A DNA stretch of 64,000 nt from Chlorokybus atmophyticus (Eukaryota > Plantae > Mesostigma and Chlorokybus algae), in the NCBI GenBank assembly GCA_009103225.1, contig RHPI01000385.1:81962-145961 (forward strand). Direction: 5' to 3'. Below the pieces are notes generated by a model that did no database searches, had not been told where the DNA came from, and worked only from the letters and a program-made list of their open reading frames with translations. Of this stretch, positions 8,767 through 63,767 are shown piece by piece; positions within the stretch are counted from its first letter, which is position 1; each line of letters opens with the position of its first letter. The position numbers and the translations under genes were made by a program.

Positions 8767-9902
8767 GGAGCGGGGCAGTGCAGGGCAACCTCGTACACAA
8801 CGTTGTTGCTCACACCAAGCGCACGCGTGTACTCAGCCAGGCTCACTAGATTGGCACAACCCTCTGCATATCCAGGAAGGAGGACACTACGGACAAATCA
8901 CTCAAATTGGGTGGCAACAGCGTTACGTAGCCCCTCCCACCCAGAAGTAAGGTGTGGTAGAGTAACTGTCAGACCTATCCTCCACTGTCGGTTCATACAT
9001 GCGCATGGGTATGGGTGTGCAAGAACAATGGAGGGGGGACCAGCATGTTGGCGTGTATAATATAGTATGCAAGGATTACCAGCAAGGCCACCTGCCAGTC
9101 AACTATCGCACGAGCGGGGGCGATTGGATTACCACGACTGTACCGCCCCAGCACGGCTCTGTTACCTCCACTTCTTCCTGCACATTTGCTGTGAGGAGGC
9201 CGGCGCTCGTGGGTCTTTTTTTTTTTTTTCTTAAGCCCCACCCCTGCGATATTACACATATTACTGCATCGTTGCCATCGTGGACAAGGTGCCCCACATG
9301 CACGAGCCCAAGATGCACAGTTTAAGGCATGAGAAATGTGTTTATCTTCATGCCCAAGAAGTAGGACTCAGATTTCACATTTACAAGTGGATATCGAGCA
9401 CCAGCAGACACGACGGCTATCAGCACGACACTTCCGTTGCAGTCGCCCAGCCAACCTTGACATGAACTTATCTGCACAATGATGGCACATCTTTCCTCAT
9501 TCTCCAATCTTCAATCAAGGACCATGCGCAGGTGGCTGCATCCGCAATGCATTGGGAGTTGCAAAGCAGGCTCCTGCACAAGTACCACAGAAAAGTCAAT
9601 GACATATATGACAATCAACATGCGCACACATAGCTGAGGTACCGAGATATACACACTTGCAATGCACAACCCGATTACATGCACCACGCCCGCATGCGCA
9701 CAGCGTCACGCATCAAGGTGTGCATGGTGTGCACTCTATGCGTTTCTGGAGAAGTTAGAGTACCTACCCCGCAACACGCAACCAGCAGCAGAGTGCGAAT
9801 CATGCAGAACTCAGCTCAGTCCAACCAACAACTTACCAAGGCAATGTGCTTGATAAATGCAATCCAGCACAAAAACTAACCACACACTGAACCTACAGCT
9901 AG

Positions 9903-28812: not shown

Positions 28813-31800
28813 ATGGCAATCCCTGCAAGCGCAGAGGTGACGTCTCCCGGATGGGTTCTGACCTACTGCATGCACGGTTGTGCTCCAAGTCAAACACAGC
28901 CGGCTGCTCATGTTACATTTATGTTATTTGAATCTATTGTATTACTCCTGATCGTCATTTTTCCGCAAGCTGTGTTTGAGGTTTAGAAATTACCTCATGC
29001 ACAGCCGGTGTCTATTCGTTCATCAGCTAACTGGTCTGCCAGTCACTCGGTGGAAGCTGCATGCAAAATGGCTTTCACACTCTACATGCTGACACTGGTT
29101 CATGCTCATTGCTTTACATCCTTATGCAGTCCGTAGTGGTACAAGTCCGCTAGTTGCATCCCGTCTTGCTGATGCCTGCGTTGATGCTGCTGCTTTGCTC
29201 AACTCCGTGTCACTCCCTTTTTCAGGTGGTCAGTAGTAAGATCGTGCGCGTGTCGTTTGGCTTCTACGCGGACGAAGAGGCTCGGGCTATTTCCGTCAAG
29301 CGAATAACAAACACAGCTCAGTTTGACTCACTGAAGAACCCTGCGCCGGACGGCGTTTATGACCCAGCGCTCGGACCTCTAGACCAGAACTCCAGGTTTG
29401 TGCTTATGCATGCCAGCCATGCGGCATATTAGTCAGCATGCGTGTCTACGGTACTATGGTTGCATGTTGTGCCCGGTACAGCATGTTACTAGCATAGCTG
29501 CGGGTTGCAGCAAGGTTCAGTTGGGATGTGGTGAACTGTTGAGTGCCGCTGCAGCTTAGTTGACAACTGCCAGAGTGTTCGTCAGCGCTGCCGTTGTACA
29601 TCATTGTCAGTTTGCAACTGGTTAAAAAGCGCATTGTCTGTTTGTCACACAATTCAATCGTATTATGAGTGCATAGTAGTGTCAATGAGCTAACCTGTGA
29701 GTATATATAAGTGTGCGTGTTTCACAGGTGTACAACATGTCGCCTGAGGTATGCGCACTGCCCTGGGCACTTCGGTCACATTGAGCTGGCTGCACCAGTG
29801 TACCATCCACTGGTATTCATGACCATGCTCAAGCTGCTGAGGTCAACTTGCCTGTACTGCCACCGCTTCAAGATGGCGACCAAGAAGGTGCAGCACCTGA
29901 TGCGCTGTCCTTTGCTGTTGTTTGGTTTGTTCGGTACCTCTGTTGTCAAGCAACCTGACATGCTTGCAGGTTGCTTTGTATAGAAGGGCCATACAGCTGC
30001 TGGCCAATGGAAAGTTGATAGAGGCGTCTGCGGTGCACCTCTTCAATGAAAAACAGGACAAAGAGGCTGCCTTAGAAGCCGCCTTAGAAGGTGGTATCCC
30101 GATGGAAGATGAGACCTTTCAGGAGGTCATTACGCACGTCGACGTGGAGGAGCCTCCCTCGGGTGACGAGTACCAGCAATGGACGACGCACACCGTGGAA
30201 GCCGCCCGCACCATTATTGGCAGCTTTTTGAGAAAGATGCCGTCTACCAAGTGCGAGAACTGCCAGGCCCATGTCCCATCCGTCAAGCGCGAAGACTTCA
30301 AACTGTTTCTGGCACCGCTGCCCGTCAAGAATGAGGCAGCAAACCTGATGAAGGGCTTGACTCTCGCAAGCGTCTTGCAGGTAGCGCGCACCCGACATGA
30401 GCATGTTGGTTTATTTGCTCGCTTCATAAAAAAGCTTGAGGCAAATGAAACATAGAAAACACAAGACATATGCTCAAAGCATTTCAGTGTGTACACAGGG
30501 TTCGCAGCTTCGTCATGCAGACTCACTTTTGTGTGCTGCAGGGCTCTGCGGGCCAAGATGCTGTGGAAGCGTTGGAAACTAAAATGGCGGAGCGGCTGGA
30601 GCAGCAGGGCATCAGAGCTGTCAGTGTTGCGGTGCCTCCTGCAGAGGTTGAAGATGAGTATGCGAGCGAACTGGATGAGGAGGGACCTCCAACAGTGGCG
30701 GCACAGCCCGTGCAAAAGTTGCCGGACTTGAAGCCGGGCAGGAAGCCGCGCGCTAAGGGCAAGGGCGGCATTGACAGTGTTGAGCTCTCAGCAGCTCCTG
30801 AGAAAGCGGCAAGAAAACCTGTGTACTTGACGCCATTGGAGGTGAGATTAGCAACTTTGTCGCATAATGGCATGATCTGCCAAGGCTGGTGGTTGATTCG
30901 AGTGTATGATTGTGTTATGCACTGACAGGTTAGAGAGCATCTGCGGCTGTTGTGGAAGAGTGAGGCGGAGACCGTGTCGCTGATATGGGGCGCAGTGCAA
31001 GCGTCAACGTCGCCGCTGGGGACTGGCTCAGTGCGTCTGAAGCGGCAGAGCGACCCCTCTGTGTTTTTCCTGCAGACCGTTCTGGTGTCCCCTAACAAGT
31101 TTCGCCCTCCGTCCTATATGAACGACAGCATCTTTGAGCACCCGCAGAACACAAACCTGGCTAAGGTTCTCAACACCAACCTGCAGCTGTCCGAAGCATC
31201 GCGCAGCGGTGATCTCGACCGTGCAACCCGCTCGTGGCTGCTGCTGCAGGTGCTGTCATGCAGCAGGCTGACCAATCTGAGTCACAACAAAACACTGTCG
31301 CAGTCGTAGGTGTTGTTGGTTCATGTTTTGTTGTGTTACAGGACGCAGTGCAGCTCCTGCTGTCCGGGCCTCGGGGGGCTGCGAGCACCCAGATGCCACC
31401 TGGCATCAAGCAGCAGCTGGAGAAAAAGGAAGGGTTGTTTCGCAAAAACATGATGGGAAAGCGTGTGAACTACGCCTGCCGTTCAGTCATCTCGCCTGAC
31501 CCCTACATTGCAACAAACGAGATAGGCATCCCTCCTTATTTTGCTACCCGCTTGTCCTACAGGTTTGCTTCAACTTTCTTGGTGTGTCATGTCACGCTGC
31601 AAGTTGGGTCACCTTGCATCATTGGAGCATTGCAATTCATTCATTTGTGTGCGTCTTTGCAGGGAGCTCGTCACTGCTTACAATGTGGAGGAGTTGCGCC
31701 AGGCCGTCGTTAATGGGCATGCGGTGCATCCGGGCGCCAATGCTGTGGAGGACAACCAAGGAAGGCTGATCACTTTGTCTCTGCTGAGCCCTCAGAAGCG

Positions 31801-34800
31801 CGAAGCCCTTGCTAGAACACTTCTCAAGTCCGGCCGCGCTGTGTATCGGCATCTTAGAGACGGCGATGCTGTCCTTGTCAACCGCCAGGTACTGCTAGTG
31901 TCCTCACTACTGCTCACTTGTTATTCGGTTCAGCATGGCCGATGTAACCAACACTTGGCATTGCATGCGTGCAGCCAACACTGCACAAGCCCGGCATCAT
32001 GGCGCACACAGCGCGTGTTCTGCGCAGTCAGAAGACGCTGCGGTTGCACTACGCGAACTGCAGCACGTACAACGCCGACTTTGATGGAGACGAGATGAAT
32101 GTGCATTTACCGCAAGATGAGTTTGGACGCGCTGAGGCATATGCCATCGTGAACGCCAACGAACAGTACATTGTCCCAACAAGTGGCGCACCCATACGCG
32201 GTCTTATCCAAGATCACATCGTCAGTGGGACACTTCTCACCAAAAAAGACACCTTCCTGACCAAGGAGGAGTATCACTTCCTCGTGTACATAGCGTGTTC
32301 AACGGTAGGGGCCACTCGCGATCTCAATGAGCCAGTGTTCGAACCGCTCCCTCCCGCTATCTTGAAACCGCAACCGCTGTGGACCGGCAAACAGGTATGA
32401 GACGATGCAATGTTCGCTGGCCAACTGGCTTCCTGCCTGTGATGTACAGGGTTAGGGTTAGGTAGTTTTTTACAAGCTGAGTTGTGGCATGCTTCAGGTT
32501 CTTAGCTCGCTCATACTCCATTTGACTAGAGGCCGAGCGCCTCTGTCCTTCAAGTCTGCATGCAAGGTGGCGTCCTCTTACTGGGGTGCTGGGAATGGAG
32601 AGGGCGAGGTGCTTGTGCGCAATGGAGAACTGCTCGCTGGCATCCTTGACAAGGCGCAGTTTGGAAAATTTGGGCTGGTGCATTCCGTACATGAGCTGTA
32701 TGGCGGCAAAGCAGCTGGCGACTTGCTGTCAGCGCTTTCCAGACTGCTCACCAATTATTTACAGGTGCATTGTTGCTACCACACTGGTTGAGGTGAAGAA
32801 CATGCATTTGTGCAAACTGAGTAGGAGAAGCAACTCCTGATCTGCGGTCTGTGCAGTTACATGGTTTTACTTGTGGCATCGACGATCTGTTGCTGGTGCC
32901 TTCATCCGAGGAAGTCCGAAGCACAATGCTGCAAGCGACGGCGCAACATGGAGCTGACGTGTATGCCGCTTTCTCCGGGTTGGGATCAAGGCCACCGGGA
33001 TTGTCGGACGAAGAGTGGGGAAAGCGCGTGCGCGATGCCGTTTCTGCACGAGTGCGTTCCCGCGATGATGCCGCAGCCGCGCTGGACATGAAAATGACGT
33101 CTGCACTATCGCCCCTGACGAGTAACATCATCAAGCAGTGCATCCCGTCCGGCCAGCTCAAGCCCTTCCCGAGGAACTGCATGTCTCTCATGACGGTGAC
33201 CGGCGCCAAGGGTAGCATTGTTAATTTCTCTCAAATCTCCGCCATGCTTGGCCAGCAGGAGCTCGAAGGTCGACGCGTACCCTCAATGGCGAGCAACAAG
33301 AGTCTTCCATGCTTCAGGTGTGCACTTGACTTAGAGGCCATGCGAAATATGTGTCACAAGTGTGGGTGTGGTGCTGACATCTGCTTTGCCCCGTCAGACC
33401 TAACGACCCGGCACCTCGTGCTGGCGGCTATATTGTTGACCGTTTCCTCACTGGTTTGCGTCCTCAAGAGTACTACTTCCATTGTATGGCTGGGCGTGAT
33501 GGTCTTGTTGATACAACTGTCAAGGTGGGTTTTTCATCAGGTTGTTTGCGGTCGGCCTATGGGTTGTAGTCTCGAGGGTGCAGATTGGGTGACCACTGGA
33601 ATGTCATGCAGACTTCCCGCAGTGGCTATCTGCAGCGTTGCCTCATAAAGAACCTGGAGAGCCTCAAGGTGGAGTACGACTACACTGTCCGAGACAATGA
33701 CAGCGGCATCGTGCAGTTTTACTATGGCGAGGATGGGTTGGACCCGACGCGCACGTCGTTCCTTAACAACTTTGCATTCATGCATGAAAACCTGCCACTC
33801 GTAACACAACAAGTGCGGCCAGAGGTGCTGCTCGGATCAGGCGTTGAGCAGGCCGGGCACAGGAACTCGAGCGATACTACAACGTTGCTAGATGAGTTCA
33901 CACTGGGGAGCTGCTTAGGTGCCGTGTCCGAGTCCTTTGCTGGCAAGCTGGGAGCTTTTGTGGACGAGACGCGTAAGAAGCTGAAGAAGAAGGCACAGCG
34001 CAAGGAGTTCCGAGACGTCATGAACATGCGCTACATGAGGGCTTTGGCGCAACCCGGCGAGGCTGTTGGCGTGGTGGCGGCACAATCTGTAGGCGAACCG
34101 TCTACGCAAATGACCCTCAACACCTTCCATTTCGCCGGCCGCGGTGAAGCCAATGTCACGCTGGGTATCCCTCGCCTGCGCGAGATACTGATGACAGCCT
34201 CACAGGTAGGCACTTGTCCAGCTGGTGTTCTGCCATCCTGGTCTTTTGAGCTGCTTATCATCTCTGCTATGTTATTTTTTGAATCAACTACTCCGTTACA
34301 GAAAATCAAGACGCCTGTAATGACACTTCCCTTGCGCATGGGATGCACCACAGAAGATGCGCAGACGCTGGCGGGTACTTTGCAGCGTCTGCAGCTCCCG
34401 CAGGTGCTGGCGGAAGCCTCTGTCGTGGAGATACCGGTCGCACAGGCTGCCGACAAGGTTACCAACGAAAGACAGTACCGTGTGCGCCTCCGCTTCCATC
34501 CCGAACACAGGTCGGAAGTGATGAACCCGTGGGCCCAGTACTCAGCTGACTTGTTGGTCATGGTGCACTATCTCGTAGAGGTTGTGATGTGGGTTGAGAT
34601 CTGGTGCTAAGCCCAGTTGTGACCGCATGAGCAGGTACCCGGAACATCTGCAGCTCACGTTTGAAGAGTGTGCGGACGTGTTTAAACGAAAGTTTGTGCC
34701 GATTGTGATTGCGGCCGTAAACAAAGCCGGCAAGCTTGCGAGAGCCGGCAACACAGACATAGGCGTGTCGACGATATCCTCTGCACCGCGCCTAACCGCT

Positions 34801-40717: not shown

Positions 40718-43700
40718 ATGCTGCACTGGATGGGAGGCTTCCGCAAAAAGGCCAAGGAGGTGCGGAGACAGTGTGTGGCATGTTCGTGCTTGTGTGGGTC
40801 TGCGCACATATGTGATGGATGCTGCGCGAGGGGAGGGGGGGGGAAGAGGAGGGGGCGGGGGGCTGCGTGCAAGGTTGTTTTGTCGTGATCCGAGAGCGCA
40901 CTGCTTGCATGGCATGCAAGCACACATGCAACGCGCACCAACACATGCACATCCCGGGGCAGGCGGTGTTGTGTGTGTTGCGTGCGTACATGCGTGCGTG
41001 CGTGTATGTGTGAGGACGCTGAGTATGAGGCAGTTTGTAAGTGACTGACGCGGTACCTGCCCATGTATATATTTGAACAGCCGTGGTGACTTGTGTGCGT
41101 GTGTGGTGTGCTGTCATACAGTATAGTGTAGCAGCGCACGTGCAAACACAGGGCACAGCAACGGTTGGCTTGTCTGTCCACGCCTCCTGGATCCTCGCTG
41201 CTAGCATCATGATGGTAACAATGACAAAATTGCAGAAGCAGACAGTGCAAGAGAAGCAGCGCAAGTTCTTTTCACAGAAACGCCAATCTGGAGGAATCAG
41301 TGGCAACCAAGTGACAGTTGGCAGAGCGTCTCTACCCAAGCTTGGAAAGTTGGCGACTTCGCTAGATGTTGCTGCAATTCAAGCCTCTCTGCGCAAGTTG
41401 CCAGGCAGGTACCCAGCAACTCCGGTTGTAAATCGCAAGCAGAAGCGTGTGGAACGACCTACTACACCAGGTAACTGTCTTGGCATTGGCTGTTTACTTG
41501 GCTTGATTGGCATGACACAATCGTCCCTTCGTCTGCAGCATCTCCTCCTCGCAATGAGTCAATGGAAAAAATTAAGCCGTGGGAGCAGCAGTATGATGCG
41601 CATCAGAGCCTGGAGGCAAATGACACAGACAATGCCTGCAGACCTGCCTCAAACAGGGTTGAGCCAAGGTAACTTTGATGTATTCCTTCACAACCATCAT
41701 TAACCTTCCAGAAGACTGCACACCAGTTGCCTGCAAAACAGCAGCTACCAGACAATTGTCCGATGCACACAGACGCACCAGGATGCCATTGGGGATTGTG
41801 TCAATCCCCAAGTTTGAGTTGCCGCATCAGGATGACAGTGTTGGTGAACCAGTGCTTCAAGCAGCAACGAAACCAACAATTGCTCAGCGTGGGAGGTCAA
41901 CAGCCCAGAACAACCTGCGCACACACTTTCCTGCAGAGCGTACGCCAGTGCCAAAGCCAGCAAAACGAGGCTTCCCATTAGAACAACACCAAGGCTACAG
42001 AGGTCAGCAAAGTACTGTCTTTGTCATGAACATGTGCAGCCAGCCGGTTGTGGCATCACAGACTGTGGTTGAATCACCATAGGTACAGAAACATTGCCTG
42101 CCGTCTCTAACTGCAATGGATCTGTTTCAGAGACAGCAAGAGACGTCTTCTCCATACTTGAAGCCAGTGCTGCAGCAGAACGCTCACAGCGCCAGACTGC
42201 TCAAAGTCTGGAGCGCCCAATTGGCCTACATACCGCGTACGACGGTTACCCAAAAGAGCGGACCAGCAACCAGCCTGAGCGAGTGTTGCAAACAGCTGCT
42301 GACCATGCATCCAGGTACACGGCATCGGACACAAGCTGAACCGCACTGCAGGTGCTGCTGTTGGTAATGCACATTATTCACACCGCTCACAACTGTACAT
42401 GCAGCCAACCAGTGTCACGGCTAGCATCGCACTACCAGCCATCCCTACAAGAGTCGAGATACGCAGGTCATGTCCAGGTAGCCACATGGAACACTGTTGA
42501 GCATGCATGGCATATGCCATCTGTATGCATACTCCAGTCGTCACCCCTGCTGCGTAGAGGGTGGCGACTGGAATGGTAACCGTTTGTGAGCATGCATCCA
42601 GCAACTCAAATCGTGTACGCAGAATGCGCCTCCGCAAAGTGCTTTGCGGCAAGACTACGTCTCAGCAGGCAGTGACTTCCAGCCTGTCAAAAGCTATAGG
42701 TTTCACAACGATACTGAGGCATCACACATGCCAGGAACGCCGCTGACCTGGCAGCTGAAGCCCTCTAGCAGAAGCCCAAATCTCAGCGACCACCGACGGC
42801 ACGCGTTCATGTACCAGGAGCACACACATGATGATAGCAACCTGCACATTGAGCAGCTGACACAACGGGACCACGAAGACAACACTGCATCACCAGCGCA
42901 GTCAGAATTGATATCGTGCGCGTTCGGTGATAGAGATCGTTGGCAATTATTGTACACAACTGCTCCACTTCTGTCTTCTATGCATTGGTCTCCAGCTGGC
43001 CACTCGCCAAGTGCGAGACAATTTGGCGAAGCGGAGAGACATGTGGAGTCTGTGTACATGCCTGAAGCGCTGCTGTCCCCTGTACGGTGGTCTCCATCGT
43101 CTGCGCATCCGCTGCACACGAGAGTTGATGATGATCTGGTAGCACCACTTGACAGACGGTTAGCACATACTGAGGTCAACAACTTGGAGCACGATGCGCT
43201 GCACCAGCTCAACTGCAGGTACCCTACCCATGAGGACAAAGCAGGTCATGGACGGTCAGCACTTGCACACCGCTCGCAGCACACATATGGCGGGAATTCC
43301 TTTCCACGGGGAACCATTGATGCTCGGATCAGGATTGGCCAAGAATCACCCAACATGACACAACTTGATGACTACATGGAGACCCGTGTGCAGTCGCCGT
43401 ACTTGCCTAAAATGTTGCAGAATGCTAGTCAGCGCGCTTCATTGGTGCCCATCTCACCTCGCATGGTACATCACGCTGACTTCCTGTCACCCTTCAGTAC
43501 ACTTGACAAGCTGGACGACGAGCAAGATTTCGGAGTACCAGGTGACGGGTGCACTGCATGTCCTGAAGGCGATGCCTTTCTGCCATCAGCTATGCGAGTG
43601 GACCTCTTAGCAGGTCGGACCCACGACGAACCATGGCAAAACAGTGCTGGCGTGATGAACCCCGCCATCAGACCTAATCTTGACTCCTTGACCCCCCGAG

Positions 43701-45577
43701 AACGCAAGGCCAGAAGTTACTCTACTGAGGCTGTTCTCGATGCGTTCAACAGCAAGGCAGTGGACTCAGAGACATTCTCTGGTACTGGCACGTCTGGTGC
43801 AGGCAACACGCTCCCGATGACATCAGTTGTTCTGCATCATGCAGCTGCTGGCATGCAGGAGCCCGCCATCAGCCTTGGTCTCGACTCTCTAAGTCCCCAT
43901 GGGGGCCACGCCACAAGATACTCTACCGAGGCTGCATTGGATGTCTTCAACAGCAGAGTAGTGAACTTTGAGACCGGTGCTGGTACCACTTGTGTAGCCT
44001 CCAAGCTCGCAACAACGCCAATTCGTTTGCGTGGTACAGTACGCTCAAAGTCTTCAAGTCCGTCATGGACTCAGCTGTATGCACGCGACAACGCAAAGTT
44101 GGCAGTGAAATCAAGTGGACCCTCGCCATACTCGCCTTCACTTACTCACACAGAGCAAGCTGCTTCTTGTCCTGTGGCTGAGCCCGGCGTTTCTACTTTT
44201 TGGTATGAAGACCTGAGGGCAGATGACGATGACCAACCAGTCGAGAATCAAGCAGATGTTGAAACAACGGCACCAACCTGGCAGCCTGGCAGCCTATCAA
44301 CATTACTGAGACACCAACACCATGCGGCTCAAGCAGCACATCCAGATCTTGTGCGCGAGCTCATGCGCTCACCGGCTAAAAGCCAAGACCAGCACGTTCT
44401 CAAGCACTTCCACGCTGATCTCCAACCCGCGACGCTTCACTCTGGTTCATATCCCGCAAGTCCCTCATGGAGTCGGCTGTATGCTCACGACAGCTCAGGT
44501 CCGCCGGTGGCACAGAAGCGACCAGTGTCATATGCACCGTCATTTGCCAACACAGTACAACCAGCTGCGCACATACACGCTACCAGTGCACTTGATGGGG
44601 CTAAGTCGCGTAGAGTGCTGCTGGAAGACCTGTTGCAGGCTGACGACCAAGCACAGAATGACACTGGAGGCTATACAAGAGAGGTGTTTCAACCTGAACA
44701 ACTTGAGAGCTTTTCATACTTGCTACAATGCAACCCTGCTGCACCACACTTTGACACTGTCCAGGAGTCGCTACGCTCACCTCCCGCGTACATGCAAGTT
44801 GACTGCCAAGCTACCGTATCGCGTATTTGCAACGCCTTCACTGATGCCCAGACGTCACTCAAGTCGAGTGATGACACAGAGACACAAAAGAGCTTTCGCA
44901 TCCGACGGGGTCCATGGCTGCACACTGATAGGGGAGGTTTTGCAGAGAGCGCTCAATCCAAGCCTTCCATCACAGCACGCACTAGCCCAACAGCCAACCC
45001 AATGTTGCCCAACAACCTTCACCCTACAGCGCTGAAGGACAACAACATCAATGAGTACGGGACACACTTCCCATTGCAGAAGATGGCTGCAGTGGTCGCC
45101 AAACAGCATGCGAAAGTACTTCCTCCAACAGCACATCCTGCCAGCGAGCTGCCTGAAAAGCAGCAAAAAGTCGCCAAGGGAGCTGAGAAAGCTGTTTCTG
45201 AGCAACCTTCGACGCAACGGGACACACAGTCAACAACCACATCAAAACCACCAGGTGGCAAATTGGATGTGGTATTGACCGCAGAGCCTGCAGCTGCTGA
45301 GATTCTACTTGACGGCAGGCAAACGGACACGCCACAAGTAAATGCGCATGACGGACAGGTGCCACAACTGCAAGTTGACACGGCAAGCAGTGCTTGTATG
45401 CGCAATGCACAAGACGCAGCGCCCGTCAACAAGCCAGACAACACACGCTCGGACTGCGATCACCATGAGTTGCCACCGCACCTGACTCAAACCAGGGGCC
45501 AACGTGCTGTAGCATTAGCAAAAGCCGCATGTACAGAGTCAGCTGGTAGCAAGCAGACTGTTAATTCTGTATGTTGA
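40718..45577 (+). CDS. HEIP1/REDIC1 (C12orf40)-like meiotic crossover factor with a long low-complexity final exon
   Basis: Spliced N-terminus MLHWMGGFRKKAKE|KQTVQEKQRKFFSQKRQ...SLDVAAI matches the family signature MLQWMGGSRRK..KQKQYFEQ..SLD. The final ORF 42644-45577 is S/P/A/T-rich. Confidence 0.6.
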
Positions 45578-47940: not shown

Positions 47941-50836
47941 ATGGCTTCCTGGGCAGACAAGGCGGAGGAGTCTGAAGGGGACGAGCCGCTGCCGCCGCCT
48001 CCGCCTCCTGGGTTTGAGGACGTCCTGGCTGGGACGCATAAGCCTGATGAAGAAGCGCTGGCTCGTGAGGTATGGCGTTAACGATGAGGGTCGACGTCTG
48101 CCACGTTTAGTACTTGATGACGTGACGCACTTTGTTCATCTAGTCAATTGCAAGCTATGAATCGATTGTAGGAGCATCCACCTCTGCATGCATGTGTGCA
48201 ATCTTAGTATATACATGTCACACCGTATTTCAGTTGGTGTAATTGGTTATTGCTTTTGTATTCAGGTGGAGAGTTTGGGCGTCTCAGAAGATAAAGGAGC
48301 TGTAGATGAGCCCACCATGAACCTCCCTAGCGACAAGTTGAATCCCGACACAGAAACACCTGAGACGGAGATAAAGAAGGTGTCTATGCTATTGTATTTA
48401 TTGCCCCGGTAGCCCTCTATAGGGCGCCCAAGCAGTCTATGACTTCTGCCCTGCGTACTGGTTGTCATGCATGCCTGCTTGTGCTTCCCACAGTGCAAAC
48501 ATACACGTAGTTTCTGCTGCTTACTGTAGTGTCTCTGTCACGCATGGACTCTTGTGCAAATGCCTTGGCAGGGTTTGAGAGTTTTCTCTGCGTCTATACG
48601 TAGGTTTACGCCAATGACACACCATATACGTCCGCCAAGAGTTTTGAGGACCTGTCCTTGAGTGAGGAGTTGCTGAGGGGACTCTACTCGGAGATGAACT
48701 TTGAACGGCCGTCGCGGATCCAAGCGGATACCCTTCCTATGATTCTCAACCCTCCGTATGCAAACCTCATTGCACAGGTACAGTTATTTGGGGGTTTAGT
48801 CAAATGGCGGGTTGCATGCATGCTCCTGCAGCTTTGAATAACGCTACTTGAACACATGCAGGCGCACAATGGCAGCGGGAAGACCACATGCTTTGTGTTG
48901 GGCATGCTAAGTAGAGTGGACCCCAAGTTGAGGCAACCACAAGCACTGTGCATATGCCCGACACGTGAACTAGTCCTGCAGGTGCGATGCGCGTGCACAC
49001 GTTCCTGGCCCGTTGTTGTTTTGTAAACGTTGTGTGAGGCATTGCTGCACATGGTATGTTGGCAGTAGTAGCGAGCATTGTCAACCACTCATGTGCCTTG
49101 TCGCAGAACAGCGCCGTGTTGAGTAAGATGGGCAAATATACGGGCATCACCTGTCACATCACCGCAGATGATGACAGTTCCAGGCCATCCTACTCAAGGT
49201 CGGAAAAGATTGCGGATCAGATTGTGATTGGCACGCCGGGCAAGTTGAAAAACTGGATAACGAAAACCCGCACCCTCCCCACCAAATACATCAAAGTGTT
49301 GGTCTTTGACGAGGCTGATCAGATGATGGATCGTGTATGTATGAAGTAGATTGTGTACTCTTTGCTTGTTGCGTCTGCCGTGCACGCTTGCAACTCACAT
49401 CAAATGTATAAACAGGAGGGCTTTGCCGATGACTCGATACGAATGATGCGTGAGATCCAAAAGAACAGCAGCCAGTGCCAGGTAAATGCATATGCTGCTA
49501 TCTGCCTTTCTGGATGCCTAGCTTGTATGTCGCTGAACACCAATCTTTCCCGTCATTAGGTCTGCTGATGGACTCTTCTGCATCAGGTGTTGCTGTTCTC
49601 TGCTACATTCAATGATAAAGTCAAGAGCTTTGCGCTGCGGCATGTCCCAAATGCTAACAATGTGAGTCATATGCTCGCGTGTGCAGTTGCCTTTGTTTGC
49701 TCCTTGTTCACGGTGTCTGTGCAGGTGTTTGTACCCAAAGAAGACCTATCGCTGGATGTTATCAAGCAGTATAGAGTGGTAAGCCTTGCACCGTGTCCTT
49801 AGCGCATGTGCCATAACTTGCATATTACGGCTGCATGAGATTTGCCCTCAATTGAACTGGCTTGCCTGCTATTGCAGGTCTGCCCAACTCCACAAGCCAA
49901 GGGCGATGTTCTAAAGAACACCATCCTTCCCTTATGTGAAAATCTGGGCCAAACCATCATCTTTGTGCGAACACGAGAAAATGCACGACTGCTGCACAGA
50001 GAGTAAGCGAGCATAGTAGCCATGACCGTTCTCAGTCGGCAGAGTCTTAACAAACTGCATCATCAGGATGACAGCGGAAGGCCATAAAGTTACTTCAATA
50101 GAGGGAGGGATGCAATTTGAGGACAGGGATCGTGTGGTTAATGAGTTCAGGGCAGGCACCACCAAGGTATTGCATGCTAAGCACAGTAAGTTCTGAGCCT
50201 GCTTTGGGTAAGTACTGTCGGGCGAGCCTGCAGCTTACTTCTATCTGTACTTGTCACTTGGTCAGATTCTCATCTCAACAGATGTGTTGGCTCGCGGCTT
50301 TGACCAAGCCCAGGTACGTGCATTCTGCCAGCATTAGCACTCGCACTGTTACTCGTGCGAATTGTCATAACATGATTGGGGACACTGCTCAGGTCACCCT
50401 TGTCATCAACTATGATGTCCCAGTGGATCGGAACTTCCAACATCCAGCGTACGAGACGTATCTTCATAGGATAGGTCGCAGTGGGCGCTTCGGGCGCAAA
50501 GGTATGTTAACGAACCCAGCATGCATGCGAGATACCTGTGCAGTTCAAAGTCAAAGTCAGCTTGACGGACTAAGGGGTGCTGTGCAGGTGCGGCGTTTAA
50601 TTTGGTGACAGGCAACAAAGAAGTTGCCATCCTCAACCAAATCGAACAATACTTTCAACACGCCATTCCCGAGGTAAGCGGTTGACAGCATGGGTACTTG
50701 CTTCGTTGTGAGCAAGAGTCCGCTGCCGAAGTGAGCTAGCACGCATGGTTCCAACCATGCCCCGTACTTTATGCAGGTTCCATTTGGGGACGATGATGCA
50801 TTTGAGCGTGTTTTGAAAGAAGCTGGACTGGCATAG
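47941..50836 (+). CDS. DBP5: DEAD-box RNA helicase DDX19/DBP5 (RH38/LOS4-like), mRNA export
   Basis: [32 protein letters not shown]|[52 protein letters not shown] at 50834. Confidence 0.94.
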
Positions 50837-52189: not shown

Positions 52190-54400
52190 ATGCGTCATGC
52201 GCGTCACCGTTGGGGATGTTGCAAGTACTTCACCGTCCATCATGTCCAGTAGTACTGCTGCGCAACACCCTTTGCCTTAGAGTCGATAGGAGCTTCTTCA
52301 TTGGATGGCCATCACACTGCATGCATCGATCAAGTCCGCCATGGCCATCGCAAGATGTAATCCATAAGTACTGATATGTAAGTACACACGCGTATGAAGC
52401 GTGCTATGTACTATGTAAGTACTACTATGTAGTACACATGCGTATGAAGCGTGCATAGTGCGAATCAATCACGCCCAACTTCATTGTTGTTGGAGTGGAC
52501 TCGAGACTGGTAATGACGCACAATTTCTGGCTAGGCCAGTATAGAAGGGTAGGTCCCTTTTGCTGTACAGTCGCGTGCAAAACCCCTCCCTCGTGTAAAC
52601 CACTGCCAAGACCAAAAAGGGAAGCAAGGTGCTCTGCGCTGTTTGCGCGACAGTCATGTGGCGAATGCAACCGTCCTCCTGGCACATGTGGGGCTGTATA
52701 TAGCAAGCAGGCATGTCCGCCACAAAGACATCATTGATGCAACGCAAGACTCCGCGTGCCAATTTTGACAGCAGCTGTGTGTTGCCTTGCCAGCTAGTAA
52801 CCTCAAATAGTAGCCTCAATTGCTGCATGAACTCCAATTCACACGATAGCAATTAGCCATTGGCTAAATGCACAGCTACATTATTTTACCTAAAATGCAT
52901 ATGCGCTGCCTATACAGCTCGTCGGCTCGGCAGCAGTGCGCAAGTACAAGTTGTTCAACAGAAACTTTAGCATGTCATACAGGCACTGCGCAGTGAATGG
53001 GCGCCAGTCATCATCATTGTTTGAGATTGCTGCTATTGTCCAGTGGTGCTGCACATATCTATTTAACTGTACATTCACATGCGGACACGTTGCTCGCACC
53101 TTCGCCGCTTGCATGTGAAAAATAGCGTTCACTAGGCGCGTCATGCGCTGCAGTAACTCAGCGGGCTGTATCTTTGTATACAGGGTGGTGAAACCCCATA
53201 TTTGCAGCTGCACGTGTTGTCGCTTGTCACTGATTGTGCTTGTGGTGTTGAACACTTTTTGCAATCGGCAAAATGCCATTGTGTCCGTCATGATCCCATT
53301 GTTGCGTATCGCCGGCAGTCCTACTGTCTTTGACCAAAGATCGTGCCACACTTGCTGCATGCATTAGTACGCCCCCCNNNNNNNNNNNNNNNNNNNNNNN
53401 NNNNNNNNNNNNNNNNNNNNNNNNNNNNNNNNNNNNNNNNNNNNNNNNNNNNNNNNNNNNNNNNNNNNNNNNNNNNNNNNNNNNNNNNNNNNNNNNNNNN
53501 NNNNNNNNNNNNNNNNNNNNNNNNNNNNNNNNNNNNNNNNNNNNNNNNNNNNNNNNNNNNNNNNNNNNNNNNNNNNNNNNNNNNNNNNNNNNNNNNNNNN
53601 NNNNNNNNNNNNNNNNNNNNNNNNNNNNNNNNNNNNNNNNNNNNNNNNNNNNNNNNNNNNNNNNNNNNNNNNNNNNNNNNNNNNNNCCCTTTGTCAGCCG
53701 GATGCTGGCATCTAACAATGATGTGCGCGACGCTGCTGTTATGAAACGCGGCTTGGGCAAGTCGTTATGCCGTTTGTACATCATGTATATATGCGGCAAT
53801 CTTGCTAATTATCGTGACATGGTTGTTTGACAGGCATGTGCTTCGTTCCATGGAGCATAGTGCTACAGCTGATGTGTCAAGGTGAAAACCTTAATAAGGG
53901 AAAAGCCCTTGACATTGTTGGCATTTCTCCCCCGTTACATTTGGTATCGGAGCAAGGTCCTCCTTGTGGGTGGGCCTTATTGTGTTGTGGTTATTTATTG
54001 TGGTAGAGCAACGCCGCCAGCAAGCCACTAGGCCGCTAGCGGCGCCGCCGTTCACATCCTCCAGGTCAGAAGCCTGGCAAGCCATCTACTGCGCAGCCTC
54101 CTGCGCAACAGCCTGCGACGCAGCAGGTACCATCGTATCGGCCGCCGGACTGACTGCCGCGCGTCAGTTCCTGCCCCCTTGCGGTCGACCGCCGCCAGGC
54201 CAGCGGCAACCAAAGCCTGGCAAGTCGCCACGACTAGCCAGACTTTCAACATAAACAAGCAACAAATTAGCTTGAATAGGTTGTTTTGTGCTAATCTGGC
54301 CCCTCTTCCTTGTGGAGAGGTGGATGTGCGTGAGTGTTTGCTGGCTCGCGTGCATTGTGTGCGTATTTGTGCACAATTAATAGCAAAAAGTGCCTCTCGA
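52190..54400 (-). mobile_element. Degenerate Penelope-like element RT (Naiad/Chlamys-type motifs), interrupted by an assembly gap; outer limits approximate
   Basis: LPHIYMMYKRHNDLPKPRFITAAS, GFTTLYTKI (DFSTLYT-like), MLKFLLNNLYL, LYRQRI..AVHLANG..LSCELEFM, RCINDVF (RYIDD-like), TRLYSKRD, GVIDSHYARFIRMC. Frameshifted. Confidence 0.85.
53378..53686. other. Assembly gap (309 N)
   Basis: Run of N flanked by short poly-C on both sides. Confidence 1.
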
Positions 54401-54712: not shown

Positions 54713-55110
54713 ATCAGGCCCTTTTTGTTACAATTCGGTCTTTAACAGTTGACTATGCCTAGTTAACAGGCGCTTGTTAGTTACCTATCAGGCCTTAACA
54801 GGTGACTTTATATAATTAACAGGCACCTGTTAGTCACACATCAGGCCTTAACATGTGACTTTATATAATTAACAGGCACCTGTTAGTTACACATCCGGCC
54901 TTACGAGGTGACTACAACTAATCAACGGGCACCTGTAAGTTACACATCAGGCCTTAACGGGTAATTACACCTAATTAGCAGGCACTTGCAAATTACATAT
55001 CAGTCCTACTTAGGTGACTCAGCCTATGTGACAGGCACTTGCAGGTTACACACCAGTCCAGCGCAGGCGACTAAGCCTAATTCACAAGCACCAACTAGGT
55101 AATTATTAAC
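54713..55110. repeat. Tandem array of ~7.5 copies of a 53-bp unit
   Basis: Unit aacaggcacctgttagttacacatcaggccttaacaggtgactttatataatt recurs at 54765, 54818, 54871, 54924, 54977, 55030 and 55083 (exact 53-bp period), with a diverged copy from ~54713. Confidence 0.95.
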
Positions 55111-57871: not shown

Positions 57872-60800
57872 ATGGATCATGGCAGGCGTCAGCAATGGGG
57901 CTGTCCAACATGCATCACCAATATTGGACAAACCAGCAGGCAAGCCATTAAGGACCATCTTTACACAGAGAGCTGCTTGGTGGCTCGCTTTCTGCAACAA
58001 GGAGTGGATTACGAGCTGCACTCCTTGGAGCCTCTTATCAGAACCATGCGAGACCAATTGCGGCTATGGGAACAAGCACAAAGGAATGCAGAGGTACGCT
58101 CAACAGTCACATGCATTTCCTTGCAAGAGCAATTTATTTTTTAGCGCAGTCCATGTGATACATGTAGCGTGGCTGCAGGCCTCCACTATTCACCCATACC
58201 CACCCTACAGTCAAGCCAACATTGCGAAAGCCAGAGCAGATAGACAGAGCTGGGCGGTATGTTGTTGCCAATCTCGCTGTGCATGTTGACTGCATGCACC
58301 TCCAATGCATGCCTACCTTTGCATACTAGGATGTGCGTGAGCGTGCGAAGTCGCGCGCGCGTGCCGAACGAAGTAGGCTGGGTTTGAGCACATGAGCGTG
58401 TGGCCATTTGTCCGGCATTCAACCAATAGTGCATCAACTAGCAATGACGCAATCCATGCAATCATTTGTGCATCAACCAGCAATGCCGCAGGTGACTGTT
58501 CGAAGCAACCAACTGATGACGGTGTGACGCAGTTGACTATTGCAATTGCAGTGTCGCAAGCATGCAGCTAACCCACATGTAATTGGTTGACAGCACCACA
58601 GTACACTAGGTCCTGTTGGAGCTCCTATGCAAGCCTGGCTTCAATCCCATCAACTAGTCCTTCAATCCCACTTGCTGATGTGCGCGGCGTCAATGCGGCA
58701 TCAGTTTAATGTGCATGTTGGCCTGTTGAATCCCGACATGTCCATTGGGGCAGTGGCGCATAATGTGCCCATGGCTCACGAGCTCCGTGACGAGTCTGCG
58801 ATCGAGGGTGGCGGGGAGAGTGCACCCAATACCACATTGTCAGCCCCCATGGCTTCCCCTGCTCCATGCAGCCCACGGGCCACTGAGGTAAGTCGCTGCC
58901 TTTTTTGCTCGTGCCTTGGTAACAAGTGCGTTAGGCACTGCACAAGCTTATATTCGTCCTTTGCAACATTGTGAGCCATCTCATCCTGGGTCCTGTATAC
59001 AACCCCCCTTGCTGCATGCACAAGTGGTCTCACCTGCCGCTCTCTTGCTCCCCTCGCAGCCAGAGCGCAACCACCTTCCGCGGCACCAGTCCTTCATGCA
59101 CTGCCATCTCCTCCACAAGAAGCACCGGTGATTGCGGGGCAACAATCCTTCTTGCCGCCACCGGCGAGACCACAGCACAATGCAACAATCGATGTGGCTT
59201 CTGCACCTACCTTACCCCACCCGCTGCAAGTTGAAGCCGGCAGTCTGCCCCAAGCTTTGGTACTTTATCAGTCACTGTGACTCTTGCCGTCCACATTTGG
59301 ACACACCATTTGAGTGCTGTATGCGCATGCAGCAGGGGTCACCACCTGCCAGCGAGTCATCAGAGGAGCTAGACGCAACCCGCATACGGCCATCAATCAT
59401 GTTAGGTGGCCAGCTCGCCTCATGGGACCACTTCAATGCGCCAACGGATGGTAATTGCTTGTATCATTGTGCATTTCGCGCCAGGCCATCCATAGCGCAA
59501 AGGGTCCTGGATGATCATAAATGCCCCAGCTCGAGCAGATTTTGGGCCATGCTGGACACCATGGACGACGACGGCACGGGGGACACTCTCCGCAAAATCA
59601 CCGCCAAGGTTGTCAATGCAGGCGTGGCGAGCAGAATCCTAGACTTCTGCAGAGCCACTGGTGCCGCGGGAGAGATGGCGCAGTATTATGACGAACTGCC
59701 TGCGACCATGTTGGCTGATGTCAATTGCAACATTGACATAGCCATGACCAAAGTGCAACAGATCGTGCGGAGAAAAGATGTGTGCGTCAAGCACCTGCAG
59801 ATGACCATGTTTGCCAACAAGCTGGGCTTGTTGATTGGTTGCGTGACCGTTTAGCGCGAGCATGGGGAGTGGATGCCATGGCCCAGCAGCGCAGTTTGGG
59901 TTGGAAATAAAGAAGCCCCCAACTCAGTCCTGGTGGTGGGCAACACTGCTCCTGATGAGCCAGAAGCACACTTTTGGCTCCTCAAGCCTGCAAGCACCGA
60001 ACACTGGTCGTGGCCTATGCATGAAGTGCCACCGGAGGTAACAGACCAGATCGGAGAGTGGCGGAATGGCGTTGCACAACAATTCAGCACCCTCCCTTCA
60101 TGCCGCGGAGACTCACTTGCCACCGCACTCTAACCATCTGGAGGCATCTCCATCAAGAAGCAGCTGTAGCTCGCCCTCTCCCTCTAAGCTTGCCACATTG
60201 ATCCCAGCCTGTCTTGTTGGTAAAGAGATTGATCGAGGTGTCCTGAAAGCTGCGCTGAAAGACAAAGGCTTCATGCGCGACCTCATGAAGCAACATGAGG
60301 TCGTAGAGGAACGGGAGGCAACCAACAAGCGCAAGGCTGTGGAGCAAGAAGAGAACGCCTTACCTCCTCTCAGTGACAGTGCCACGGAGAGCGCCTGCCA
60401 GGATGTGCAGGTTGACAAAAAAAGAAGAAGAAGGTTGTTGGAACAAAGGACGCTGACAGGATTAAATAAGGAAAGGTGAGGCATTGTTACAACGTTAGAA
60501 GAAGCACAGCGCCTTGAAGCCTCAATGGGGCTGACTGTGTGTCCTGAGTAGGCACAGGCGGGTTTACAGCGTCAAGTGGCTGCTCAGCATCCTCCAGAGA
60601 GACAGCCGGTGAGGCACGAGCTGCCTAAGCTCAAAGCACCGACGCGCAGACGCTTTGAGGGGCTGACTCGTAGTGCAAAGGAGTTGATCGCCCTGCAATA
60701 CGCCCAAGACGCGCTGCATCACCGCATGCGGCATGCCTCGAGGTGGGTGACGAAAGTATGCAATAAGTGGGAGCAAACGCGGAGAGTGCGGTCTGAACAG

Positions 60801-61576
60801 ACCTCTGAGGGTTGGCCATGGTTGGAACCCATACACGATATGGACCTCCGTAGTACGTTGTTGCCCCTCGCCGTCCTCGATATGATGGTGTTGTTGCTGC
60901 CGCAGATGTGCAAGAGCTATCCGCGGAGCAAAATTTCGACCTGCTGCAGCAGATGTACCTGTCGATGTCGACTAATGCGGGTTGAGATGTGTGCCACTAC
61001 CTAAGCAAACATACTGGGTGGCAAGTAAAACCATTCGAGCTGTACTTGGCATGCTTTGACTGGCAGTGGCTGTATGTCATACGGCACGTCGAGCTGATTC
61101 TGTGGAAGCGCGAAGAAAATGACGATGCGGGGGAGTACACGAGTGACGACAGCCATGTCGAGGGCCTGGATGAACGCATGCTTGACGAGACCATCAAGAC
61201 CAGCAGGTGGTGTATGGCGGCAGATGGGCAACAGGTGATCAAGCAGGCAGTGGAGCGTTATGCTGCGCCATTCAGATGGGAGTCGCTACGCCTGCGACGC
61301 GATAACAGAGTTTGGTGGCAGAGGCAGCTTGCACACCCGCGTGCACCATGTGTGCTGATTTGTCGCATTGAAGAGCCACCCCCCCCAGCGGATGGGGAGA
61401 CGCCCTGTTGCAAGAAAGCGATGTGCCATGTCTGCATCATAGCACATCAGAAGACTGTGGCAAACAAATCAAAGAATCTACAAGCGTGTCCATTCTGCAA
61501 GCAACCTCACCCGTTTTGGTCGCCACGCCTGATGCAAGACGCCAACGTGTCGGCGGTGATTTGGCCCCCGTCTTAA
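57872..61576 (+). pseudogene. C2HC zinc finger - OTU-like cysteine protease - coiled coil - RING-like gene (gene B), with in-frame stops
   Basis: CPTC..HL...C finger (57902-57976); OTU motif TDGNCLYHCA (59444-59470) with distal His EAHFWLL (59969); RING-like CVLIC..TPCCKKAMCHVC..CPFC (61349-61498). In-frame stops at 59852, 60477, 60549 and 60983, plus a frameshift near 60880. Confidence 0.75.
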
Positions 61577-62039: not shown

Positions 62040-63767
62040 ATGATGTCGGCGGCAGCAGTTGAATCCCCCTCACCTAGGAGACCATGCTTGGTGTGCCCAC
62101 AATGCAATGCGTACGTATGTGCCAATGGCCGTAGGCAGCAAATGCGAGCACACTTGACCGAATGCCAGCGAGTGCAGACAGTGTGCCACGGTTTTAGTGC
62201 TGCTTGCTGGCATCACACCACACACAATGTCGACGTGTTTGGCTGCCGCCTCGGCCAAGTGCTGTGCAAGGAACCCGAGTTTTTCCATTGCGTGCAGTGC
62301 GTGTGCGAATCGTGCTCGCGCTCATGCTTCGAGTGGCGAGGGGAACCCATGCGCTTCTTCACATGGACAACACCGGGACATGTGGTTAGTGGACAGGTGG
62401 TGGATGCTGTGGAGGTAATCCACAAGAGTGGACCGCGACGTATCACTGCATGTTATGTTGGGCGTATGCTTATTTCATGCATGTTGAAGCTGTTGTCGCA
62501 TTCAGAGCAGTCTTGCACGGTGTGGGCGTGGGCAGTTCCATCCCCTGGCCGCTGTAGAGGAGGCAGACCATCGATTGTTGGACAGCGCACTGCATCGGCT
62601 GCGAAAGGTAGTTAAGTTGGGATGCGAGCAACTGATCGGCGTGAGTGTCATGATGCATTAGCCGCTGAATGGGGAATGGTATGCGGGCGTTGTGGAATCA
62701 TTCAAGCAAGCGTCAGGTCAGCATCGCTTCGTGGCGCGCGAGATTGAGGACGCATCATATATGCATGGTGCAATGGAAAATGTCTTTGCAGGGCAGCACC
62801 ATACAGTATTCGATGACGGTGATCGACCACAAACCATCAACTTCAAAGGGCACAACGTATTCGCGTACACATCAGTTGACGGGGCACGCCATGTTCAGCG
62901 CGCCGAAGGGGAGAACGTCAGTCGCAAAGTAAGCCCGGACGGCATCATTGCGAGTCCCTGGCCAGCACCACGGCCAGCCTTGACCACATACACGCCATTT
63001 GACAACAAGCTTGGACGCACACGCAGACCAAGGGCACTCGACCTATTCTGCGGCGGTGGCGGTGCCAGTGTCGGTCTATACCATGCAGGCTTTGACGTGA
63101 CCGGGATGGACATAAGTCCTCCTCTGAGTACCCGCTGCCCTTCATACACCGCGATGTATGCACCCTGAGTGCAGAAGAACTGAGCAAGTACGAGCTCATT
63201 TGGGCCAGTCCACCATGCCAGGCCTATTTAGGTGCTATCTCGGCACCTCAACGGGCGGCACATGGCACATCCAGGAGACACCAGGATATGATACCGCTCG
63301 TCCAACGTCTGCTGCTTGCAAGCCAGGTCAAGTTTGTGATTGAGAATGTGCCAGGAGCAGCTTCCTCATTCAAACCCAATCTGTCCCTTTGTGGCACAAT
63401 GTTTGGCCTATCAACTTTCCGACACCGTCTGTTTGAGACACAACCAATGGTAGCTACCCCACCAGCACGCTGCTCGCACACGGGCAAGGCAGTTGGACTG
63501 CTATCGCCGCACCTGTCCGCTAGCGCGAAGAAGACAATTGTGACATCAAATGCGCCGCAGCAAATGTACCCGGTCTATGGCCTTCCAAGCACCAGGGGCG
63601 GCATTGCTGCGTGGCAAACAGCGCTAGGAGTGCCATGGATGACCTCGGCCGTTACCATAGCGAATGCAGTTTCTCCCGCAATGGTGGAGTGCATAGGGCG
63701 TCTCATGCTTGAAACAATGGGTATGCGCTGTGACTACCCTCATGTGTCATGGAACTATGAGGCTTGA
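62040..63767 (+). pseudogene. C2HC zinc finger - Tudor - phage/bacterial-type C5 DNA cytosine methyltransferase fusion (gene C), lightly disrupted
   Basis: MTase motifs I RALDLFCGGGGAS..AGFDVTGMDI, IV IWASPPCQAY (63207-63221), VI FVIENVPGA (63342), LCGTMFGL..RHRLFE, and X LGVPWMT..ANAVSPAMVECIG. Tudor LIGVSVMMH*PLNGEWYAGVVESF..G|QHHTVFDDGD. TAG at 62659 and a 1-nt frameshift near 63124. Confidence 0.88.

Follow-up and report, generated by a model that had tools for sequence, protein, structure and literature searches.

A Tudor domain joined to a short, phage-type cytosine methyltransferase in a disrupted gene of Chlorokybus atmophyticus

Eukaryotic systems for 5-methylcytosine (5mC) are thought to have been built by the capture of prokaryote-type methyltransferases and their wiring to chromatin readers; recent captures that can be traced are, to our knowledge, few. 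A stretch of 64,000 nucleotides from Chlorokybus atmophyticus (contig RHPI01000385.1; hereafter the window, whose numbering is used throughout) raises the question of whether it holds such a capture. Near its end, at 62040–63767 on the + strand, a segment resembling a Tudor domain is followed by the motifs of a cytosine-5 methyltransferase (C5-MTase). Is this one gene, where does the methyltransferase (MTase) come from, and is the gene still intact? The answer that we consider reasonably probable is that a virus-derived orphan C5-MTase was fused to a host histone-reader module in a gene with host-type introns, and that the gene is now a pseudogene, unless its lesions are errors of assembly.

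One gene with a Tudor domain and a methyltransferase

Reading of the open reading frames (ORFs) and motifs of the window confirmed the full set of C5-MTase motifs, together with the upstream Tudor segment, that an earlier note on this DNA had described. Between 62503 and 63168, frame 1 is interrupted by a single TAG only, and spans the Tudor-like segment, a linker and the motif DLFCGGGG; frame 0, from 63096, holds EYPLPF, WASPPCQAY, IENVPGA, LCGTMFGL, FRHRLFE, QMYPVYG, WMT and ANAV, and ends with the TGA at 63765–63767. Because the second half of the Tudor domain, a linker of 45 amino acids (aa) and the MTase share one exon and one frame – and because the linker up to motif I contains no internal ATG, so that the MTase has no start codon of its own there – the fusion is physical, and not an artefact of gene prediction.

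The predicted splicing yields a model of three exons (62040–62414, 62506–62716 and 62792–63767), with ~1.56 kb of coding sequence and a product of ~520 aa, in which a Cys/His-rich N-terminus is followed by a Tudor domain of the PDS5C/MSH6 type and then by the short C5-MTase (Table 1). The earlier note had proposed both introns (placing the start of the first, a phase-0 intron joining the Cys-rich exon, at ~62416) and had taken the gene to be eukaryotic, and here it holds up well. The window also contains the gene for RPA1, the largest subunit of RNA polymerase I, five introns of which were located by alignment to homologues: these are ~75–100 nt in length and follow the pattern CAG^GT...(T/G)(G/T)CAG^ (where ^ marks the splice point). 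Candidate introns A and B fit both the size and the splice pattern, and it is for this reason that we call them host-type. The locus lies in a eukaryotic nuclear context.

Identification of the Tudor domain depends upon intron B. When this intron is removed (the query carrying an X at the stop codon), the phmmer match to chain A of Protein Data Bank (PDB) entry 7DE9 reaches 30.7 bits (E = 2.2e-6; 46 aligned residues), compared with 18.8 bits (E = 0.016) when it is left in, in agreement with the earlier note, which had expected a PDS5/MSH6-type Tudor from this predicted splice. Entry 7DE9, the Tudor domain of Arabidopsis thaliana PDS5C bound to H3K4me1, is the best and the sole significant structure match of the spliced segment; the next matches are the Tudor domains of 53BP1 (E of at least 0.025). 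To judge by this alignment, the domain is of the PDS5C/MSH6 type. It shares with the plant Tudor domains of PDS5C/RDM15 and MSH6, of which the former reads H3K4me1, the pattern G..V.V.WP....(W/Y)Y.G.V.S......H.V.(Y/F)DDGD: among the aromatic positions aligned with 7DE9, the WY is kept and F stands in place of Y. The differences are that the plant domains are carried by cohesin-regulator or mismatch-repair proteins, and that at the VWWP the second Trp is here a stop codon and the preceding Trp is His. Upstream of the Tudor domain, exon 1 is a real Cys-enriched ORF, its 14 Cys in 125 aa being reached by none of 5000 shuffled sequences.

Table 1. Features of the Tudor-MTase gene (^ marks a splice point)
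Feature	Position	Strand	Basis
Exon 1: ATG start, Cys/His-rich N-terminal region, 125 aa with 14 Cys	62040..62414	+	ORF
Candidate intron A, 91 nt, phase 0, GAG^GTAATC...ATTCAG^A	62415..62505	+	Size and splice sites like those of the five RPA1 introns
Exon 2: linker and first half of Tudor; 7DE9 homology from ~62617	62506..62716	+	Translation; phmmer alignment to 7de9_A
In-frame TAG within Tudor, aligned to second Trp of VWWP (PDS5C Tudor)	62659..62661	+	phmmer alignment
Candidate intron B, 75 nt, phase 1, CAG^GTCAGC...TTTGCAG^G; no stop if read in frame	62717..62791	+	Splicing improves 7DE9 match
Exon 3 start: second half of Tudor (QHHTVFDDGD...) to ~62880, linker of ~45 aa, same frame into MTase	62792..63009	+	Translation; phmmer
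MTase N part, frame 1: lead-in GRTRRPRAL and motif I DLFCGGGG (63040–63063)	63010..63117	+	tblastn homologues, 63–73% identity over 33–35 aa; PHROG 363, E = 1e-7
Frame-break site, one base short relative to all homologues, in CCTCCTCT	63118..63125	+	tblastn alignments of homologues change frame
MTase C part, frame 0: SPPCQ (IV) 63207–63221, ENV (VI) 63342–63350, RHRLFE (VIII) 63420–63437	63126..63767	+	Motif reading, PHROG, HMMER, tblastn
MTase C part, continued: short variable region, QMYPVYG, WMT, ANAV (X) 63660–63671, tail CDYPHVSWNY, TGA 63765–63767	63126..63767	+	

Family and nearest relatives of the methyltransferase

The two pieces of the MTase on either side of the frame break (the N piece and the C piece) both match PHROG family 363, 'DNA methyltransferase', the C piece with an E-value of 4.6e-12. 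A HMMER pass over 1.84 billion representatives returned 2208 matches at E<1e-3 (the best at 1e-36, four below 1e-30), none of them above 43% identity. By tblastn, 306 phage genomes match, mostly those of Mycobacterium, Streptomyces and Gordonia phages, at 32–36% identity over ~90% of the C piece; matches in IMG/VR likewise lie on phage-size contigs. Comparison with solved structures required a family profile, a single-sequence search of the PDB with the C piece alone having given no match: the profile finds 3g7u and M.HaeIII (2e-9), M.HhaI and DNMT2 (1e-7), and DNMT1 at motif I only, its highest scores going to bacterial enzymes. The AlphaFold2 model of the C piece has a predicted local distance difference test (pLDDT) score of 71.8, and its Foldseek matches in the PDB, while weak, are all C5-MTases; the match to DNMT3 is itself weak (E = 6e-3, 12% identity).

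The motifs agree with these searches. Motif I (DLFCGGGG) aligns with motif I of all homologues and, through the family profile, with that of M.HaeIII, M.HhaI and DNMT2; motifs IV, VI and VIII follow in C5-MTase order, in columns that are invariant or nearly so in the family alignments. Motifs VIII and IX lie 58 aa apart, a spacing also seen in family members of 200–240 aa, and a Pfam scan of the locus found none of the companion domains of the DNA methyltransferase (DNMT) families (BAH/RFD, PWWP/ADD, SNF2). Judged on its sequence, the window MTase is a short C5-MTase of phage type, and not a member of DNMT1/CMT, DNMT3/DRM or DNMT5. The short actinobacteriophage MTases of PHROG 363 (Gordonia phage Yakult gp45, Mycobacterium phages Sheen gp59 and Pukovnik gp82) resemble it in having a catalytic domain of ~220–250 aa, in their motif order (I, IV, VI, VIII, short variable region, X), in the motifs LCGTMFGL, RHRLFE and DWMT, and in a VIII–IX spacing of ~45–60 aa. 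They are, however, stand-alone phage proteins without a reader, whereas the window MTase forms part of an intron-containing nuclear gene and belongs to a different clade.

That clade emerged from a maximum-likelihood tree of 66 sequences. The window MTase is sister (support 96/85) to a group of seven proteins with a methyl-CpG-binding-type (MBD) insert; together with a further 'long-insert' group these make up a clade of 18 members (99/99), outside of which fall the phage-size IMG/VR loci and the short representatives. The closest relatives are 40–49% identical to the window MTase (47–49% for P0042; P and L numbers denote related proteins and related loci, respectively). With the C piece alone as query, a scan of contigs from metagenomes and IMG/VR recovered no close relatives; alignment-based scans recovered only relatives of at most 40% identity.

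In P0001, P0004, P0010 and P0011 the MBD is inserted at the target-recognition position, between motifs VIII and IX (Pfam MBD being above threshold for P0004 and P0010), while P0028 carries an N-terminal zf-CW domain. The MBD-insert members (loci L001, L002 and L249) include, besides these four, P0129, and the zf-CW member is found at L003/L004; the sister group, with a longer and related insert at the same site, comprises P0005–P0009, P0012, P0014, P0019 and P0097. Clade members have 120–208 aa between motifs VIII and IX, as against 58 aa in the window MTase, in which tblastn with insert-bearing homologues detected no insert remnant. An hhalign comparison relates the inserts of one subgroup to those of the other (94%, E = 9e-8), so that the insert is probably ancestral to the clade and was probably lost in the window lineage. 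What the window MTase does share with the MBD group is a C-terminal tail, 'G.t.DYP...Y'. With the viral-contig enzymes (P0001, P0004, P0010, P0011, P0042 and P0028) it further shares the lead-in 'G..RRRP..DLFCGGGG', the motif QM(F/Y)PVYG and the joining of a catalytic core to a reader of chromatin or 5mC; the difference lies in the reader – an MBD between VIII and IX or an N-terminal zf-CW in the former, an N-terminal Tudor domain and no insert in the latter – and in the viral-contig genes being intron-less and situated on compact, virus-like contigs.

Gene content suggests that the contigs of the relatives are akin to viruses of eukaryotes. The contig of P0042 (L249, 25.7 kb) encodes an mRNA triphosphatase, a eukaryote-type topoisomerase IIA of 1089 aa, kinases, a thioredoxin and YqaJ; L006 carries Rpb10, a kinase and a RING protein; and the Tara contigs with relatives are compact and rich in ORFans. 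Ten neighbour genes of relatives gave no match to phage hallmark families. L001 was dropped as evidence of giant-virus affinity, its 660-aa GyrB-like gene being of a kind that could be phage or bacterial, and L249 and L006 were used. The earlier note's description of the MTase as phage or bacterial in type is therefore borne out in part: the enzyme does belong to a short family distinct from DNMT1/3/5/CMT, but its immediate relatives are found on giant-virus-like contigs, not in phages.

Two further observations concern these relatives. At L249:9239-10534 a gene for an MTase with an MBD is split by a single in-frame TGA into two ORFs of the same frame (9239–10021 and 10100–10534), and could be a pseudogene or a case of read-through or recoding. 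Tandem double short MTases (two catalytic domains per protein, or two adjacent frame-shifted copies) occur in P0002, P0003 and at L169:9986-11259.

Comparison with known reader-methyltransferase proteins

Is the architecture itself new? None of the top 150 MTase matches contains a Tudor domain, and the spliced Tudor segment, compared by tblastn and phmmer to 167 related loci and 280 related proteins, found no match; the N-terminal extension of P0014, considered as a hidden Tudor domain, was rejected (similarity over 21 aa only, E = 0.02). The general logic of such a fusion is already known. The bdelloid N4CMT combines a horizontally acquired prokaryote-type DNA methyltransferase with a chromodomain (PMC8885841), and DNMT5b of microalgae carries Tudor/MBD modules (PMC9998398): in both, as here, a methyltransferase is fused to a chromatin-reader module. 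Neither shares its catalytic family with the window MTase, N4CMT being an enzyme of the amino-methyltransferase fold that makes N4-methylcytosine, and DNMT5b belonging to an ancestral eukaryotic family with an SNF2 ATPase. The suggestion of the earlier note that the architecture may be undescribed needs to be narrowed accordingly: a Tudor-DNMT fusion had been reported for DNMT5b (PMC9998398), while the combination of a PDS5C-type Tudor domain with this MTase family is not known within the collections searched, from which the source lineage and its relatives seem to be missing. The coupling of readers to viral MTases within the clade may itself be undescribed.

A second point of comparison is provided by virus-derived 'orphan' DNMTs of eukaryotes, described as 'generally sparse, lacking companion domains' (PMC12344493), and by the DNMTs in endogenous giant viruses of Amoebidium (PMC11244446). 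Like the window MTase, these are C5-MTases outside DNMT1/2/3/5/6, related to those of giant viruses and often not expressed or not functional (PMC12344493, PMC11244446). Set against the description in the first of these papers, the window MTase differs in being joined to a Tudor domain and a Cys-rich region, and in its host-type introns.

Lesions, surroundings and rival explanations

Two lesions interrupt the gene. When ten homologues were aligned by tblastn, their N-terminal part fell on 63013–63117 (frame 1) and the remainder began at 63123/63126 (frame 0); since the alignments switch frame there, one base has been lost between 63117 and 63126, within the simple run CCTCCTCT. This agrees with the 1-nt deletion that the earlier note had placed near 63124, and it separates MTase motifs I and IV. 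The other lesion, the TAG in the Tudor domain, is a base substitution and not an insertion or deletion. An intron that would remove it was considered and rejected: for the GTGAGT at 62641, one possible partner is an AG 21 nt away, leaving too short an intron, and the other is the AG at 62791, use of which disrupts the frame. The RPA1 exons of the same window (~2.9 kb) read without a stop or frame break relative to homologues; base accuracy therefore looks good, and both lesions are probably real. Of the 55 family columns with at least 80% conservation, 46 are kept in the window MTase; among near-invariant positions, Q replaces R ahead of motif VI, and SP stands for PP and M for Y at motif X and its surroundings. 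As assembled, the gene is either dead or on the way to it, with a nonsense codon in the Tudor domain and a frameshift in the MTase, and a present-day function of this copy is not supported.

The surroundings of the gene are as follows. The RPA1 gene occupies 31321–34526 (+), probably beginning at ~29900, and was identified by Pfam Rpb1 domains 4 and 5 and by matches named RPA1; its best named relatives are 37–56% identical, with no self-match, and an exon groups with land plants, a grouping due to a named set of plants, fungi and animals only; the host lineage is non-opisthokont and little sampled. Elsewhere in the window are the longest ORF (42644–45574, +; 977 aa, low-complexity, rich in Ser, Pro and Ala, with no Pfam domain) and an exon with the C-terminal motif of a DEAD-box helicase (50117–50605, +; Helicase_C, E = 4e-5), presumably part of a host gene. 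A single N lies at 38571, and a tandem repeat of ~6 copies of a 53-nt unit (54720–55090) is next to a longer gap of Ns; − strand ORFs beside that gap (52890–53799) have no Pfam match. The window contains no Rfam match and no tRNAs, and a scan for bacterial promoters and terminators remained at chance level. Closer to the Tudor-MTase gene, + strand ORFs at 59132–61573 have no homologues and no Pfam domains; one (59132–59851) contains an OTU-protease-like motif, 'DGNCLYHC', and another (60989–61573) has at its end a Cys cluster resembling a RING finger (zf-C3HC4, with an E-value of just 0.46).

How else might these data be explained? The gene could be intact and functional in the organism, with the TAG and the lost base being draft-assembly errors or alleles of the sequenced individual. 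The assembly is indeed a draft, with a gap of 309 Ns and a single N in this window, the frame break falls in a run of low complexity, and all catalytic motifs and most conserved columns survive with just two lesions in the whole of the coding sequence. But a substitution underlies the TAG, the RPA1 exons are clean and near-invariant positions of the MTase have changed; we allow this explanation a small but real chance. Alternatively, the chimera may never have functioned, a fragment of a viral MTase having landed in or downstream of a host Tudor gene and being in frame by chance. The broken state of the gene would fit, as would the lack of a second Tudor domain with this MTase family among the 280 proteins and 167 loci, and a slightly lower GC content at third codon positions in the MTase (0.53–0.55, against 0.58–0.65 in exons 1–2 and the RPA1 exons). 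Against this, only two lesions interrupt a reading frame that extends over the Tudor half, the linker and the entire MTase, the MTase lacks its own ATG, and its motifs are fully kept despite 50–60% divergence from every relative, which argues for long purifying selection once it had diverged. That the fusion was stillborn is very improbable.

A viral or mobile context could account for the locus in another way: the MTase might reside within a mobile element or an endogenous giant-virus region and serve that element, not the host. Its nearest relatives are on virus-like contigs, the upstream ORFs are homologue-less in the manner of viral ORFans, and orphan DNMTs within endogenous giant viruses and retrotransposons are documented (PMC12344493, PMC11244446). 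Yet there are no direct or inverted repeats of at least 60 nt flanking the locus within the window (which ends 233 bp past the MTase stop codon, the 3' flank lying beyond), no transposase, reverse transcriptase, integrase, capsid or nucleocytoplasmic large DNA virus core gene among Pfam matches in its last 10 kb, and no second copy of the MTase within it by tblastn; the GC content of the locus equals that of the rest of the window, and the introns are of host type. We regard this explanation as quite unlikely, and the earlier note's proposal of carriage by a mobile element found no backing in the sequence surveyed. There is finally the matter of whether the Tudor exons and the MTase are two genes, or the MTase part of a contaminant or mis-scaffolded contig. 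Scaffolding alone ties the last 10 kb to the part of the scaffold with RPA1, but a single exon, uninterrupted and in one frame, runs from the latter half of the Tudor domain through the linker into motif I, the introns match the RPA1 pattern, the GC content is the same and gene density is nothing like that of bacteria; such an origin is hardly conceivable.

Several findings nonetheless weigh against the favoured account, namely that a virus-derived MTase was fused to a host reader and has since decayed. At the level of individual domains, PF00145, with a cut-off of 22 bits, gives 15.2 for the broken C piece and no match for the N piece (intact relatives from the clade pass, at 29.8–37.5 bits); the Tudor segment reaches 16.5 bits against Pfam Tudor PF21743, with a cut-off of 27.2, and does so in spliced form only; and exon 1 has no Pfam match (even at E<1), no homologue and no confident fold (AlphaFold2 pLDDT 43), which leaves the C2HC finger of the earlier note unsupported. 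At the level of the gene, both introns and co-transcription are predictions, and a gap of Ns (53378–53686; 309 nt) lies between the RPA1 part of the scaffold and the Tudor-MTase locus. As to history, the putative giant-virus origin of the relatives rests upon the gene content of metagenomic contigs and not upon classified genomes, and the proposed transfer from virus to host could have run the other way. With no second Tudor-MTase of this family, moreover, selection on the fusion is not demonstrable, and the fusion could have been non-functional from the start.

If the favoured account is correct, then a short C5-MTase would have come, by horizontal transfer, from a family otherwise common in actinobacteriophages, and within it from the giant-virus branch, and a host N-terminal module – Cys/His-rich region and Tudor domain, split by introns – would have become joined to it in one exon and frame. 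In the intact protein, the Tudor domain would bind methylated histone H3 (in the PDS5C type, H3K4me1) and so hold the MTase on that chromatin, where C5 of cytosine would be methylated at a short target sequence by means of the catalytic Cys in SPPCQ and the Glu in ENV. Along the way the lineage would have lost a 5mC-reading, MBD-type insert and gained a histone reader: such an exchange is probable, because the nearest viral enzymes carry the MBD insert and the window MTase does not.

The locus may then represent the capture of a methyltransferase that is in progress, or has just failed: the origin of the catalytic core is traceable (to a phage-type family and, within it, a giant-virus clade), the ligand class of the reader is known and host introns are present. 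Should an intact copy exist, it would be a compact reader-writer pair. A stronger proposition, for which we see a modest chance at best, is that the lineage has, or recently had, an undescribed class of DNMT: a giant-virus-derived short C5-MTase, stripped of its MBD insert and recruited by a Tudor domain to H3K4-methylated chromatin. If true, then this class, together with the viral zf-CW and MBD versions, would make up a family of 5mC writers, both viral and host, that are guided by readers and have an origin independent of DNMT1/3/5. The relatives, for their part, suggest that large viruses of eukaryotes couple this catalytic core to readers of 5mC and histones, which bears on how viruses and hosts may manipulate one another's methylation.

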